Shown: positions 9,492-20,000 of the stretch, piece by piece | How positions within the stretch are numbered: the first letter of the stretch is position 1 | How the letters are laid out: each line of letters starts with the position of its first letter | NCBI GenBank assembly: GCA_965644265.1 | Contig: OZ286462.1 | Span: 49,538,001 to 49,602,000, forward strand | DNA: 64,000 bases | Reading direction: 5' to 3' | Origin: Glycera tridactyla | Lineage: Eukaryota | Position numbers and translations under genes: made by a program | Notes under the pieces: model-generated | Seen by the model: the letters and a program-made list of their open reading frames with translations, nothing else | The model's database searches: none | Told to the model about the DNA's origin: nothing

Positions 9492-11005
9492 ATTATGTAT
9501 ACCACTATCTAAATACCTTGTCATGTATAGGAACCAAAATTTTGTTTATTTTGCCCCTTCCCTGATTCTAAGACTGAAAAGCCTGTAGACACCACTTGTT
9601 TTGAGAGACTTCTTATCATCTTCCCTTCTTCCATATGACACTCAAATATGCCTCATGTAATAATGTTTGTGAAATTTGTGAATTGTCTGTAATACTTGTA
9701 TGTATTCTGTGTTCTAGATTAGCTGGTGAAAGGTTCGGATTTGCAGTTTCTGTTGAACCCAAGAAGGTGACTGCGATGAAACTTGAACCAGAGCCTGTAG
9801 ATACAGAAGATGTCAAGGATATTGCCGAGAAAATCATAAAGAGGGATCCGGATGATAGTGATGACAGTGATGATAGCTCAGACACAGATGATATGGACAC
9901 TGTGGTAAGCTTCTTTGGGTTTCTGTCCTCACCACGCCTTTAGCCAGCCATGAGCCCTTGAGCCATTTGGTCAAGAACTTTTCCGTTTCAGCCCATGAAA
10001 ATCTGTCTAGGAGGATGAAATTCATAATAGATGAGCGAAGATATTTTGCAAAATACCTGCTGCAAACATTGTTAAACAAGTACTTATGACAGAATTTGTA
10101 CTATATTGTGGTAAATTACACCATGGCTATTTGGTAAGTTGGCTGTCCATACAAATGATGAATTAGGAACCGTTCAGCTCTGGTTTTGTGATCCTGGCTA
10201 AATCCATGGTCCTTACTATCCAGGGGTGAAATTAAAACGGTTCCGATTTAATCACAAACCACTGCAGATATTCCTCATCCTCTGCATCACTAATTCCAAC
10301 ATAGCGATGGGACAATATGTTCAAATACAGTCGAACCTCCCTATAGAGACTGCCTTCGGTTGCATCAAAAGGTGGTCTTTATAGGGAGGTGGTCTTTATA
10401 GCGAAGTCGTCTATTGTTGAAAATACTACCACGGTCACAGCTCAGGGTGGTCTTTATACGGAGGTGGTCTTTATAGAGAGGTGGTCTTTAGAGGAGGTTC
10501 GACTGTATAAGAGGCATAAAAGTAGAATCGTCATCCTGCATTCATGCATGCTTCATAACTGCATCTATTTTGCCTGTCATGAGGACTGGATATGCGCTTA
10601 TTCATAATTTATTGGTTTCTTTCAAAGCCAATTTTTTTGAATGCATTTACATTCAAGTGATCATTCAAGTCTAAGCAAAATCAACCAATTTTGGACTATG
10701 ATCACTCATTTCACTGCTAATATTATCTGAGCTATATTTGGCAGTAGGGCTGTGTATTGCCAGCCCTGTCACGATACAATACGGTTCGCGATACGGTAGT
10801 CACGATACGCAATACGTATTGCGTATTGCGATACACCCCAGGCAGTTCATTCAAGTCGGGAAAATCAATCAGGAATATGAACACTGGAGTCTCATGGAAA
10901 AGATAAATAGTAGCTTGCATTGAAAATAGCACAAATCAATTCCTCTGCCAATTCAATGATTTTTACCTCGTCTCAACGAAGTTGAGGGGAGGTATTGCGG
11001 TCACT

Positions 11006-11061
<56 letters not shown>

Positions 11062-14000: not shown

Positions 14001-17000
14001 AAAATTGGTTTTTCAGAAACAGATTTTTCTAAAGAAGGTGGCTGTCCATAGCCTTGCCATACTTGGTACAGATGTACTGTAGTCTCGCGCGTGTACGCGC
14101 AGGTTCGGACAAACGCGCATCCCCCGTTTCGTCAAAATGTCGGAATAGGCGCATGTCCTCGCGCATACGCACACCCTCGAAAAATCACGGTTGAACTGTG
14201 TGAAACCCGAAAGAATTAATGAGAAATCGATCTTTTTACTCATCCTTGTACACGAATCGCCATCTTGTATCCGTCTTCTTCGCGCATTGCATGATGGGAG
14301 ATGTTGAAAAATATTAATCGTGCGTACCTTGTTCCCTCCAACCCCAACCTCGTTCTCTATTTGGGCTATACAAATATACGATCAGAGACGGTTCTGTCGG
14401 GATTAGGGTTCGAGATCGTGAGGCATCATGGGAGAAATAAAGTTAATAATTACATCATCTAGAAAAATGGCGGCCGGGTGTTGGTAAGTGCTTCATTCCA
14501 CGTGATAGGGCGAAGAATAAAGCAAAAACCAGATAGTTTCGACAAGGTGCGCGTTTGCACGAAAGTACTATACGCGCATCTTCGGACGTACGCGCATCCC
14601 CGTTTCGTCAAAATGTCACGATTTCGCTCACTGCGCGTACACGCGCGAGACTACAGTATGTAATAGCATTCCCTGATGAATTCAAGCCATAGATGGGGTC
14701 TCCCATTAGGCCTGATTGGTTTTGGGTGAAAATTGTTTTTTCAGAAATGGATTTTTCTAAAGAAGGTCGCTGGCCATAGCCACACCATACTTGGCATAGA
14801 TGCAGTTCATAGCATTCCCTAATGAATGCTAGCCATAGATGGGGTCTCCCAACAGGCCTGGTCGGTTTTGGGGTGAAAATTGGTTTTTCAGAAATGGATT
14901 TTTCTAAAGAAGGTGGCTGTCCATAGACAGTCCAAATTTGGCATGGATGCAGTTCATAGCATTCCTTGATGAATGCTAGCCATAGATAGGGTCTCCTAAC
15001 AGGCCTGGTTGGTTTTGGTGGGAAAATTGGTTTTTCAGAAATGGATTTTTCTAAAGAAGGTGGCTGTTCATAGCCACACCATACTTGGTACAGATGTACC
15101 TAATATCATTCCCTAATGAATGCTAGCCATAGACAGGGTCTGCCATTAGGCCTGGTTGGTTTTGGTGGGAAAATTGGTTTTTCAGAAATGGATTTTCCTG
15201 AAGATGTTGGCTGTCTGTAGCCTCAGCAAACTGAGCATGGATGTAGTTCATAGCATTCCCTAATAAATGCTAGCCATAGATGGGGTCTCCTAACAGGCCT
15301 GGTTGGTTTTGGGGTGAAAATTGGTTTTTCAGAAATGGATTTTTCCAAAGAAAGTCGCTGGCCATAGCCACACCATACTTGGTACAGATGTACTTGATAG
15401 CATTCCCTAGGGATGCTAGCCATAGATGGGGTCTCCCATCAGGCCTGGTGGGTTTTGGGGTGAAAATTGTTTTTTCAGAAACAGATTTTTCTAAAGAAGG
15501 TGGCTGTCCATAGCCTTGCCATACTCGGTACAGATGTATGTAATAGCATTCCCTGATGAATTCAAGCCATAGATGGGGTCTCCCATTAGGCCTGGTGGTT
15601 TTGGGGTGAAAATTGGTCTTTCAGCAATGGATTTTTCTAAAGAAGGTGGCTGTCCATAGCCTTGCCATACTTGGTACAGATGTATGTAATAGCATTTCCT
15701 AATGAATGCTAGCCATAGATGGGGTCTCCCAACAGGCCTGGTTGGTTTTGGGGTGAAAATTGTTTCTTCAGAAATGGACTTTTCTAAAGATGTTGGCTGT
15801 CCGTAGCCACTCCAAACTTGGTACAGATGCAATTTATGTCATTCCCTAATGAATGCCAGCCAGGGATCAGGGTTCCTGACAAGGCTGATTGACTTTTGGG
15901 ACAAATGTGGATTTTCAGAAATGGATTTTTCCTAAAGATCGTCGCTGCCCCTAGCCACACACTAAACTTGACACAGATGTCTTTCATAGCATTCCTTCAC
16001 AAGTGCCTGCAATGGATGAGGACCGATGACAACCTTGTTTGTCTTTGGGGACAAAAATGTAAATGTGAACCAGACCTGACTTCTGATGTGCATCAGCTGA
16101 TGGATCCAACTTTTGTTTGAAAATTGATTTTTTTTAAAATTGATTTCCGCAGCATGAGTTGGGTCATCTATGTGTTACATATATTTGAGGCGTTCGAGTT
16201 GGCTTCGTTGAGACGAGGTCCGCCTTCAGTGAAGGCTATGTTTAATATGTATAACAACATGTCATGACTAGAAAATGGCATAAATATCAAGTGAATTGTT
16301 GATTTCCCTCTTGTTATACATCGATATAACAACATGTCAAGACTAGAAAATACTGAAATCTCATGCTTTTGACATATTTATCAACTGAATTGTTTATTTC
16401 CTCACTCAATATAAAAACGACAACTATGCGATCACTTTGGAGTGAATATAAAGAATGGAAGGAAACTAAACCACGTTGATGAAATCATGCGCAGTCTGGC
16501 AGGGGCCGAGAGTTGACGCGATAACTCATTGTTTTTCGATTTTTTTTGTGAGACGTGACAGAGAGCAAAAATAATGGCAGAAAATGAAAGATCGTGTGGA
16601 CGAGTTCCTATCTTGATAGCTCGTCCAGTGGACGAGGGGCTAAACTCACAGGGTATCTAAGATGTGTTTGGCAGCAGGGGCCCATTTCATGACTCTTGCT
16701 AACCTACCAGAAGAATGCATGCTACTGTCACTCATCAGATAAAGTAGGGGTGGAGCTCTTGCTAGTATAGATGAAATAATACTAGTCCAAAGTGTAACTG
16801 TTGCCACTCTGTGGGAGGTCACCTCAGACATGCCTGGTCACCCTAATCAGCTGGACAACCCCCTTCTGACTACCCCCACTTCATGCCCAATCCCAACCCC
16901 AGTTTAATCACAATCAAACCTGTTTCAAACATATGGCCACAGAAAGACACAAAAGTGGATTCTTAGAACAGGTACATGCTTACAGTGGAGGTGAATGGAA

Positions 17001-20000
17001 GTGTAAATACTCATATGGGATGAATGCGGCATTGTCGATTAGGAAAAGTTTCTCCTTAGTACAGTTTTAGGCTAGTTCGACTATATTTTCTCCGAATGTA
17101 CTGAAATCTACAATGGATATCTATCTTGAATATTCATGGGTACATAGGATGGTCTGTCATTGCAGATTCCTTCTTATCAGGTATAGGATATGTGCCAACA
17201 ACATACTTAGGAGACCACCCCAAATGCCAATGAAAAGTGGTCTCTCAAGACAGGTGGTCTCTCATTGGAGGTATATTTGACTAGGTCAAATAGAGAAGAG
17301 CTGATAAAGTGTGGTCTCCCAAAAGAGGGGTCTCCCAAGACAGGTTTCACTGTATGCTATTTATGCAAGGAAGCAGTTTTATAATTTCCCATGAAAAAAA
17401 TCAGCATCTGTGTGTTTTCTGATTCCATTGTATTATTACTATACCTGATCTTGATGATCAATCGAATGGATGTGATAGTTCAATGGACCCGCGAAAGGGC
17501 ATTATTCGGTGAATATTATAATTCTTAGATCATGAAAATTGGACTATAATGTGGTGGAGAGAGCACAATATATGCTGATTTTTAATACTGGCACAATTCA
17601 TTGTGATATATGAGGGCTCAAACTGGATGTTCACTTTTGTGTTCTTTCACCCCTTGATATCCGGGCAAGTGCATGTAAGATTCGGGCAAGTACCTCTTGG
17701 GTCTACTTGCCCGAAGGGCAAGTACCCATTTTCACTTTTGTCGACCACTGATTGTCATGAACTTAATTGTTGATTTCCCTCTATCAATATAAAGACATGT
17801 CAAGACTATAGAATACTGAAATCACATGCTTTTGGCATATTGATCAACTGAATTAATACCTGTACCATTGGCCAAAGTTATTCCTAGAGGTTTGGCTTCT
17901 CGTGGAGATTGCAGTATTACCTGTGATAATGGAATGGCACTCACTGATAGGAAATTTTATGGTTTGTTCATGGCACTGTGACTAGCAGCAATCCATTTCA
18001 ATGACATGATCAAGATTGATCAGGATTTTGCAATCAGTTTATGTATGAGACAGATCGTAGTGAAGATGGACCTGCTTGAGGACACCTTTATGCAAAGACC
18101 ACCCTGCATAGTGACCACAACAGTATCCTACAGTAATCAACTCAGCAAAAGCAACCTGTCGACAAAGACCATTTTGATGTGATGGTGGTAGACAGGTTTG
18201 AGTGTATGCATATTCGATTGGCAATAGAGAAGCTACTGGAAAAAGTAGTGTGTGTGTGGGGGTGGGGGGTGGCAACAAGGGATGCTCCTGTCCATCCATC
18301 GTTATGTTGAAAGGTTATCACAACATTTGGTCATTGAGAGGCATTTCTTGTGATGGATGAATGAGACAGATTTGTATCATCTCACATCTGTCAGCAATTT
18401 CACAAGTCTGGGGAGAGAAGCTGACCAGCAAGAAGATAGGACAAATATGTATCGCAATACGGATGTTTGTGTATCGCGAGTATTGTATGGGATTCTTGTC
18501 TCGGTTCGAACCGGTGTACCGGTATATCGTTACAGCCCTATTTGGCAGCATGAGTGGAGATGTGGAAATCGCCAATATAAAGTATCTTCAACAATGTGTG
18601 TTAAATGTTAGTGATTTTAATCTCACTAGAAAGAGACAGATATTTTGCATGGCTTTGGAGCAGGGGAGGCAAAAGTTCTGATGACTGGGACATGTTTGTT
18701 CTAGAAAATGCATTTAATGATCAGTTTTGTGATGCTAAAAATGAAATACAGAAAATTGATTCTAACTTAGTAAGAGCAATTTAGTGGAATCAAAACCCGT
18801 TTCGATTGTTGAGTGAATCATTCCACCACTTGCATGTGGATTCTCGTAGAAATAAATCTTGTATTACCGGGATTTATTTATCTATTTATTCAACACCTGT
18901 TCATTATACACGACCATAAGAAATCAAAGGCTGATTCTGATTTCCATTGGAAATTATGTTCTGATTAAATCTAGAAAACTGGATCTTCAGGAATGCTGAA
19001 TTAGATGGTTAAGTATTAGGTTATTATTTCAGAAAAAGGATAAAAAAGTACTCAAACAGACAAACATAACATATGCAGTTTGACCGGATATACAAATGAA
19101 CATGATAATCTAGATAATTCTCAACAATCGAGACAGGATCAGGGTAGACATGTATGTATCATATTGTAGATGACAAGTGGCGCTGGTATCGGAGAAGGTG
19201 GGGAGAGTACGTGGAAAGCCATCAACGATGAGGAGGCAGACGAGGATATGGTGGAGGAACTCATAGCCGAGACGGACGCGATCAAGAAAGAGAAGACGCC
19301 TACCAAGAAAAGGGCAACACCTGAAGGTCAGTACGTGGATAAATTGATACAAATTCATGCAACCAAAGTTCTCTGACTTCATCCTGAAAGCAAGCATACT
19401 GCCTCTAATCTTAGATTTCGAGTTTCTTAATTTGGTGTAAGCTGCTCGGAAAACTGGCAGGGATATATCTAAGATTATCGAAATTGGGGGCATCCCCCTC
19501 CTTAACTGAGATGAAGGGTCATTTCTCTACAAATTTTTTCACAGTGGTTCAACTCAATATTGATAATGGGAATCAATCAGGTGATTTGTTGGGGCACCGG
19601 GCCTTGAAGCATGCCAAGGCAAACTGTGCATTCCAACAAGAGTCTATGGTGGTGGCTATTTCATTTAGTTATAACGAGGACCAGAGTGAGATGGTACAGT
19701 TGAAAATTGAATCAGGGTTTAGGTGGAGCTGGAAAATTCGGAATTCGTGGTTGATGATATTATTTCCCTGCATTAAGAATTTGGCGGGGGGGGGGGGGAA
19801 GGGGGGGGGGAGGTATTTCAAGACAGTAGTGGAGAGAGGAAAAAGGCGAACGGTCTGTATTTGTTACCTGTTGTCTGTTGTAGTGGTGGATATTGCTGAC
19901 AGTGATAGCGAGGAGGAAGACGTTGTGATGCTAGGACAAGAGGGCGGAGACATGGAAGCCACAAGGTGAGATGCCGCTAATATCTAAGAAATGGGGACAT

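Follow-up and report, generated by a model that had tools for sequence, protein, structure and literature searches.

What occupies most of a 9.3-kb intron of a putative RRP45/EXOSC9-like gene of Glycera tridactyla, in what order did its pieces arrive, and could they move together? The intron lies in a 64,000-nucleotide stretch of the assembly GCA_965644265.1 (contig OZ286462.1; C10:49538001-49602000), which we refer to as the window and which was compared with the whole 2.04-Gb assembly. A reading of the window made without database searches (the sequence-only reading) had described an outer hAT-type element, a 5.3-kb HINE-like element inside it, and inside that a satellite entered by two further transposons. 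Each of these layers was recovered when the elements were traced to their families, and the whole is very probably a nest of four insertions of ordinary DNA transposons. In the sequence of events that we favor, a 2.5-kb long-form copy of a young, abundant, non-coding hAT-type family would first have been pasted into TTTGGCAG, duplicating 8 bp; a HINE already bearing a 147-bp satellite array would then have entered a run of five T (T5 run) of the hAT element without target duplication; and a 188-bp miniature inverted-repeat transposable element (MITE1), with a 6-bp duplication, and a 580-bp Tc1/mariner-type element of the same kind (MITE2), with a TA duplication, would have entered two satellite units, the array being altered in addition by multi-unit duplication. 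The boundaries of the elements, their target duplications, their family membership and the absence of the inserts from other sampled copies are matters of direct comparison, described below; coordinates are collected in Table 1.

The outer hAT-type element and its family

The outer layer is a member of a non-autonomous hAT-type family. The sequence-only reading had placed its terminal inverted repeats (TIRs) and a perfect 8-bp target-site duplication 7.8 kb apart, and both copies of TTTGGCAG were located immediately outside the 9-bp TIR TAGGGCTGT (10745-10753) and its reverse complement at the right end. Transposons of the hAT type are recognized by a short TIR beginning YARNG and by a duplication biased toward nTnnnnAn. 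The window TIR has the YARNG start, and the 22 perfect 8-bp duplications available, which comprise those of the window copy, of 19 sampled copies and of two composite elements discussed below, show an excess of T in second and A in seventh position (22/44 against about 30% expected, p 0.004). The brackets formed by TTTGGCAG and TAGGGCTGT are not due to chance, because both ends recur elsewhere in the same genome, the two arms having at least 135 and at least 304 candidate places at 95-99% identity.

Twenty copies were sampled as places where a left-arm and a right-arm match could be paired. The same two ends were found in all of them, contrary to the concern that the ends might belong to families that never pair at such a distance, and 19 are flanked by a perfect 8-bp duplication of their own, different in each copy. 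Copy lengths cluster at 2.45-2.55 kb, with short forms of 0.97-1.36 kb, while longer copies hold nested inserts. Paired ends, individual duplications and a usual length of about 2.5 kb together identify the outer layer as a young non-autonomous hAT-type element, and the confirmation of its family bears out what had been proposed for it. The 2.5-kb backbone contains eight CGATAY motifs: four in the first 90 bp, three in the last 90 bp and inverted relative to those, and one in the intervening 2.3 kb. In the window copy, both ends and each of the seven subterminal motifs are intact. The arms contain no open reading frame (ORF) longer than 106 amino acids, all ORFs being short or overlapping the ends.

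Alignment to canonical copies accounts for the whole of the outer element. Window positions 10745-10965 correspond to canonical positions 1-221 and window positions 16238-18541 to canonical positions 215-2509, at 97-99% identity and with no further breaks; since the arms are colinear with the canonical copies, 10965-16243 is the sole extra piece of the window copy. In the tree of hAT backbones, the window copy falls within the long-form clade (100/100) as sister to the HINE-free copy L005, from which it differs by 1.3%. The sequence-only reading had also listed a Tc1-like MITE at 17205. A MITE-like stretch is indeed present at 17205-17352, but it does not represent a separate local insertion: it matches a TA-flanked MITE family (TIR CAGTAAAACCTGTCTTGGGAGACC) from position 14 onward, so that its 5′ inverted repeat is missing, and it lies within the 16596-17749 segment that is absent from short forms. 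As it occurs in every 2.5-kb copy, this remnant was inherited with the body of the subfamily.

Candidates for an autonomous partner were sought in the assembly. The hAT dimerization domain PF05699 has at least 149 genome matches, many of them in open frames of 600-1,100 amino acids, and no similarity to the TIR or ends of the window element was found within 1.5 kb of the best 12 of these loci. The long inserts of copy L006 and of one composite (C4) contain low-complexity ORFs only.

The HINE, its satellite array and the two MITEs

The element inside the hAT copy is a HINE of 5,279 bp. HINEs are DINE-1-like non-autonomous Helentrons (Thomas et al., 2014, PMC4067079), and the Cg_HINE elements of Crassostrea gigas carry satellites (Vojvoda Zeljko et al., 2020, PMC7492417). 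Their hallmarks are a pair of subterminal inverted repeats (subTIRs), of which the 5′ one adjoins a further inverted repeat; a microsatellite; tandem repeats in the central part; a palindrome near the 3′ end; strings of T at the boundaries; and an oligo-T target that is not duplicated (PMC4067079, PMC7492417). All of these listed structural features are present in the window element. Its subTIRs form 17-nt perfect inverted repeats (10965-10981 and 16203-16219), and the palindrome GCCTTCA-G-TGAAGGC, 7 nt from the end of the element, folds as well. The extent of 10965-16243, which agrees with the 5.3 kb given earlier, is confirmed by a comparison of 22 HINE copies (the window's, 18 independent ones and three inside other hAT copies): all 22 start with ACCTCGTCTCAACGAAG and end with the inverted subTIR, the palindrome and CTATGTTT, and a T5 run precedes the element in 18. 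In the literature searched, the subTIR strings do not occur in any paper.

The hAT copies that lack a HINE provide a paralogous empty site, which fixes the HINE boundaries within 3 nt and directly displays landing in a T5 run without duplication. Empty GATTTTTAATATG in these copies becomes GATTTTT-(element)-AATATG in the window; the insertion adds three T and no duplication, and the boundary is accordingly ambiguous by up to 3 T. The point of entry is the T5 run at position 216-220 from the left end of the hAT element. The window HINE differs by only 0.4-0.9% from its nearest relatives, L027 and L030, and is therefore young; in the HINE tree it sits among young non-composite copies. Among copies L027-L044, the length of (CGGCGT)n varies (element positions about 42-120) in elements otherwise 98-99% identical, and the module after the microsatellite begins at element position 68 to 122. 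Possible sources of Helentron machinery are not rare in the genome, where the Helitron_like_N (Rep) domain has at least 104 matches, with open frames up to 2,837 amino acids and several occurring as near-identical pairs; many of these genes, like many of those with the hAT domain, look intact.

The satellite array varies strongly in length. The 22 HINE copies carry 7-32 units, with an approximately fourfold length difference between near-identical copies. By a rough, ungapped measure, a sharp 5-unit periodicity peak (0.976) is seen in 11681-12916, and 6-unit peaks (0.90) in L042 and L044. This same rough measure does not support a family-wide pentameric higher-order repeat: the peak at lag 5 is confined to 11681-12916, and in other copies the peak is at lag 6. 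The pattern suggests that multi-unit duplications arose separately in individual copies, not that a single pentamer was inherited.

The array is broken at 12921-13108 and at 14077-14656, where the two further transposons of the sequence-only reading were found again as MITE1 and MITE2, with 6-bp and TA duplications, respectively. Neither is present in any of the 21 other HINE copies, and the 735-bp counterpart block at 11741-12475 is likewise without MITE1. Members of the MITE1 family are numerous, with at least 3,797 candidate places at 91-96% identity. Of 13 other copies, 12 are consistent with a 6-bp duplication and one is degraded; a 1.34-kb member nested in the hAT copy L007 is consistent with it as well. 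This larger member (L007 2476-3814, C120) has a perfect 13-nt TIR and the 6-bp duplication CCTGTA. MITE2 is bounded by a 28-nt perfect inverted repeat (14075-14102 and 14631-14658) and belongs to a family of at least 1,430 candidates of uniform length and 97-99% identity, the nearest copy being 1% away. A second MITE2 copy sits at a TA in the hAT copy L005, and the same site is empty in the window's hAT element, at 17545-46.

Order of events and possible movement of the cassette

A search of the genome for the outer element with and without its cargo, proposed as a check by the sequence-only reading, found both. HINE-free 2.5-kb copies are common, and both hAT/HINE junctions recur at exactly three other places in the assembly (C1, C4, and C11). 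The C1 composite (L021 and L025, C1:118.095-118.105 Mb) measures 9.6 kb overall, with the duplication TCCACCAC; the C11 composite measures 3.0 kb, with the duplication GTGATAAA; and the C4 composite (L022, L024, and L026, C4:78.139-78.153 Mb) now lacks its right end. Each of the three has a short-form backbone, is 4-8% diverged and holds a HINE at the identical nucleotide, and their arrays measure 1.7 to 9.8 kb. These older composites contain much further nesting. The right arm of C1 has taken up another insert, of 2.8 kb; in C4, about 7 kb of sequence interrupt the HINE array, a 3.1-kb insert lies in the right arm, and L024 contains His/Pro/Thr-rich low-complexity ORFs (2091-3279, - strand).

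A single origin of all four composites was rejected in approximately unbiased (AU) tests, both for the hAT backbone (p 3.6e-5) and for the HINE (p 1.9e-11). The same T5 run was therefore entered at least twice, and the event in the window is independent of the three older composites. The canonical hAT element has only seven T5 runs and four ATTTTT sites, so repeated use of one site is not surprising. Within the older trio, pairwise distances are star-like, exclusive shared substitutions are at background level, and a C1+C4+C11 clade in the hAT tree is neither supported nor rejected (AU p 0.375). The HINE tree unites C1 and C4 (99/98). This grouping was considered as a sign of joint movement and dropped: it loses weight because at least 39 non-composite relatives outscore the C4 copy as matches to the HINE of C1, and subfamily membership explains it. 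The three older composites are equally well explained by repeated hits on the T5 site.

The sequence-only reading had held that the order of insertions can be read directly. This is correct for what entered what, and goes too far for where and when the HINE entered relative to the landing of the hAT element, since hAT elements move by cut-and-paste and sequence alone is silent on entry before as opposed to after arrival in the intron. We infer that the insertions of the HINE and of both MITEs took place at this locus. An alternative, which we consider unlikely without thinking it far-fetched, is that the hAT element already contained the HINE, and possibly the MITEs too, when it landed in the intron, in which case the satellite cassette would already have moved once as a unit. 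Precedents exist in the same family, where two copies on different chromosomes share nested cargo, the whole long-form clade carries 1.16 kb of extra sequence, and members of 3.0 and 9.6 kb have perfect duplications; moreover, cut-and-paste leaves no donor, hence the missing sibling composite is no counter-proof. Against this, the assembly contains no second long-form copy with a young HINE, the end branch of the window HINE (0.0022) is shorter than that of its hAT host (0.0068), and a threefold longer substrate would be a less likely mover given that most copies are 2.5 kb long.

Other observations weigh against our preferred succession of four local events. The left flank of the hAT element (10512-10744) is single-copy in the assembly and therefore provides no empty site for the hAT insertion; a search with this flank found neither a haplotig nor a paralogous empty site in the assembly. 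Neither a cognate hAT transposase (among the best 12 PF05699 loci) nor a cognate Helentron (the ends of the Rep-bearing loci were not read) was identified. Lastly, MITE1 differs by at least 4% from every relative, though its host HINE is less than 1% from its own relatives; this age mismatch likely reflects an old copy that was recently moved by cut-and-paste and left no twin.

Mobilization of the whole cassette in trans, as had been envisaged in the earlier reading, is plausible but unproven. Intact ends with seven CGATAY motifs, together with the transport of about 1 kb of cargo within the family, favor mobility, and the cassette may still be a substrate for hAT transposase; the lack of a transposase gene with these ends among the best 12 PF05699 loci counts against it. 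The transport of cargo is seen in L015 and L019. At one shared site, both contain a nested TA-flanked element of about 1 kb, 97% identical between them; the two copies group as a 100/100 clade and differ in chromosome and in 8-bp duplication. The hAT family has demonstrably carried nested cargo of this size to new sites. Among the four composites, no evidence was found for movement of a HINE-bearing copy. It is conceivable, if on balance doubtful, that the hAT family acts as a second-order vehicle for the satellite, having swallowed a HINE array and moved it, and that the three older composites are products of such moves. Alternatively, the T5 run at hAT position 216-220 may be a preferred HINE landing site that received up to four independent entries by two HINE subfamilies.

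The nest itself, or the length of its array, could in principle be an artifact of repeats collapsed or chimerically joined, as satellite arrays and high-copy transposons are error-prone in assemblies; we hold this to be very improbable, because every junction is an exact transposon boundary with the duplication typical of its class, and matched duplications at three levels of nesting are not what chimeric joining would yield. That the outer ends are two independent short elements lying 7.8 kb apart by chance, an idea to which a TIR of only 9 bp and an element three times the usual length might lend some color, is scarcely credible given the pairing of the same arms in 20/20 sampled copies (19 with their own 8-bp duplications), the identical 8-bp flanks, and the colinearity of the window copy minus its HINE with the 2.5-kb consensus throughout.

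Host intron and comparison with known systems

The nest makes up 84% of the 9,265-bp host intron, in agreement with the statement that it forms most of a 9.3-kb EXOSC9 intron. The host gene appears to be RRP45/EXOSC9-like: RNase_PH matches lie at 2709-2840 and 4204-4320 on the + strand, and an open frame at 6902-7063 matches residues 205-251 of human RRP45/EXOSC9 (E 6e-14, in a search with this single exon). The nest gives no sign of an effect on EXOSC9, and nothing suggests a host-gene function. The same intron contains a smaller element just upstream of the hAT copy (10325-10508), bounded by perfect inverted repeats of 16 nt (ATACAGTCGAACCTCC) and holding tandem repeats of a 17-bp unit (GGTGGTCTTTATAG...); its right end matches many genome places at 100% identity. 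A run of N lies near 9190-9340.

Table 1. Positions of the nested elements, their parts and the host intron in the window (a dot stands for no assigned strand).
Feature	Position	Strand	Remarks
Host intron (9,265 bp; GT...AG; phase 0); flanking putative exons 9718-9904 and 19170-19326	9905-19169	+	Exon ends, in frame, predicted from open frames and splice motifs only
Left 8-bp duplication TTTGGCAG of the outer hAT-type element	10737-10744	.	
Outer hAT left arm: TIR and four CGATAC subterminal motifs in the first 90 bp	10745-10964	+	98-99% identity to canonical 2.5-kb copies, positions 1-221
HINE, non-autonomous Helentron-type, 5,279 bp, in hAT T5 run without target duplication	10965-16243	+	Empty site GATTTTTAATATG in hAT copies; 22 copies with same ends
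5′ subTIR ACCTCGTCTCAACGAAG (10965-10981) and adjoining inverted repeat folding back on it	10965-10993	+	DNA fold -10.1 kcal/mol, z -5.6
(CGGCGT)9 microsatellite, HINE left module	11007-11061	+	
194-bp repeat, two copies, HINE left module	11083-11460	+	
Satellite array of about 29 units of 147 bp, including a 735-bp (5-unit) block present twice at 98-99% identity	11594-15995	+	
MITE1, 188 bp, TIR CAGAGATGCCAAC, 6-bp duplication GTTTTG (12915-12920 and 13109-13114)	12921-13108	+	
MITE2, 580 bp, 26-nt perfect TIR, TA duplication (14075-76 and 14657-58), Tc1/mariner-type	14077-14656	+	
HINE 3′ end: subTIR 16203-16219, palindrome GCCTTCA-G-TGAAGGC 16222-16236, tail TATGTTT	16203-16243	+	
Outer hAT right arm: TIR 18532-18540, three CGATAY motifs in the last 90 bp	16244-18540	+	97-98% identity, colinear with canonical positions 229-2509
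1.16-kb segment separating the 2.5-kb long form from the 1.0-1.4-kb short forms	16596-17749	+	Long-form clade 100/100
Degenerate 5′-truncated remnant of TA-flanked MITE family (full TIR CAGTAAAACCTGTCTTGGGAGACC)	17205-17352	+	Inherited by all long-form copies
Right 8-bp duplication TTTGGCAG	18541-18548	.	

Overall, the finding is an ordinary nested-transposon cluster of known element kinds and involves no new mechanism. As a description of four transposon families from a single genome, the locus is unusually clean and carries its own internal control, and it is of use both in annotating repeats and in studying the spread of dispersed satellite arrays. Nested or "multi-MITE" insertions, with transposons inside transposons, are known from the MITE literature on rice and maize. 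The nest resembles these in that the order can be read from interrupted elements and in that composites of the family were amplified as a unit (L015/L019 and the long form). It differs from them in its passenger, a rolling-circle satellite carrier within a cut-and-paste element, whose joint movement is hypothetical.

The individual layers can likewise be set beside their counterparts. The outer family is similar to non-autonomous hAT elements of the Ac/Ds type in its 8-bp duplication with a weak nTnnnnAn bias, its short TIR starting TAGGG, its subterminal repeats clustered at both ends, its lack of coding capacity, and internal regions that vary by deletions and nested insertions. Unlike these, its dominant subfamily is itself composite, having taken up 1.16 kb of foreign sequence, and an autonomous partner with the same ends was not identified among the best 12 PF05699 loci examined. 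MITE2 resembles Stowaway-like Tc1/mariner MITEs, with a TA duplication in both copies examined, long perfect TIRs, no ORF, and a uniform length (584-585 bp if both flanking TA are counted, 580 bp if not). The inner element departs from known HINE and Cg_HINE elements in its 17-nt subTIR (11-15 nt in known ones), its CGGCGT microsatellite unit and its 147-bp repeat unit, and the sequences are unrelated as far as tested. In architecture, it corresponds to them throughout. The 5′ subTIR lies next to an inverted repeat, the left module includes a microsatellite, the central tandem array keeps a fixed orientation, a short palindrome comes after the 3′ subTIR, and a string of T marks the boundary. 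Insertion is into oligo-T without duplication, and the array differs in length between copies, here from 7 to 32 units.

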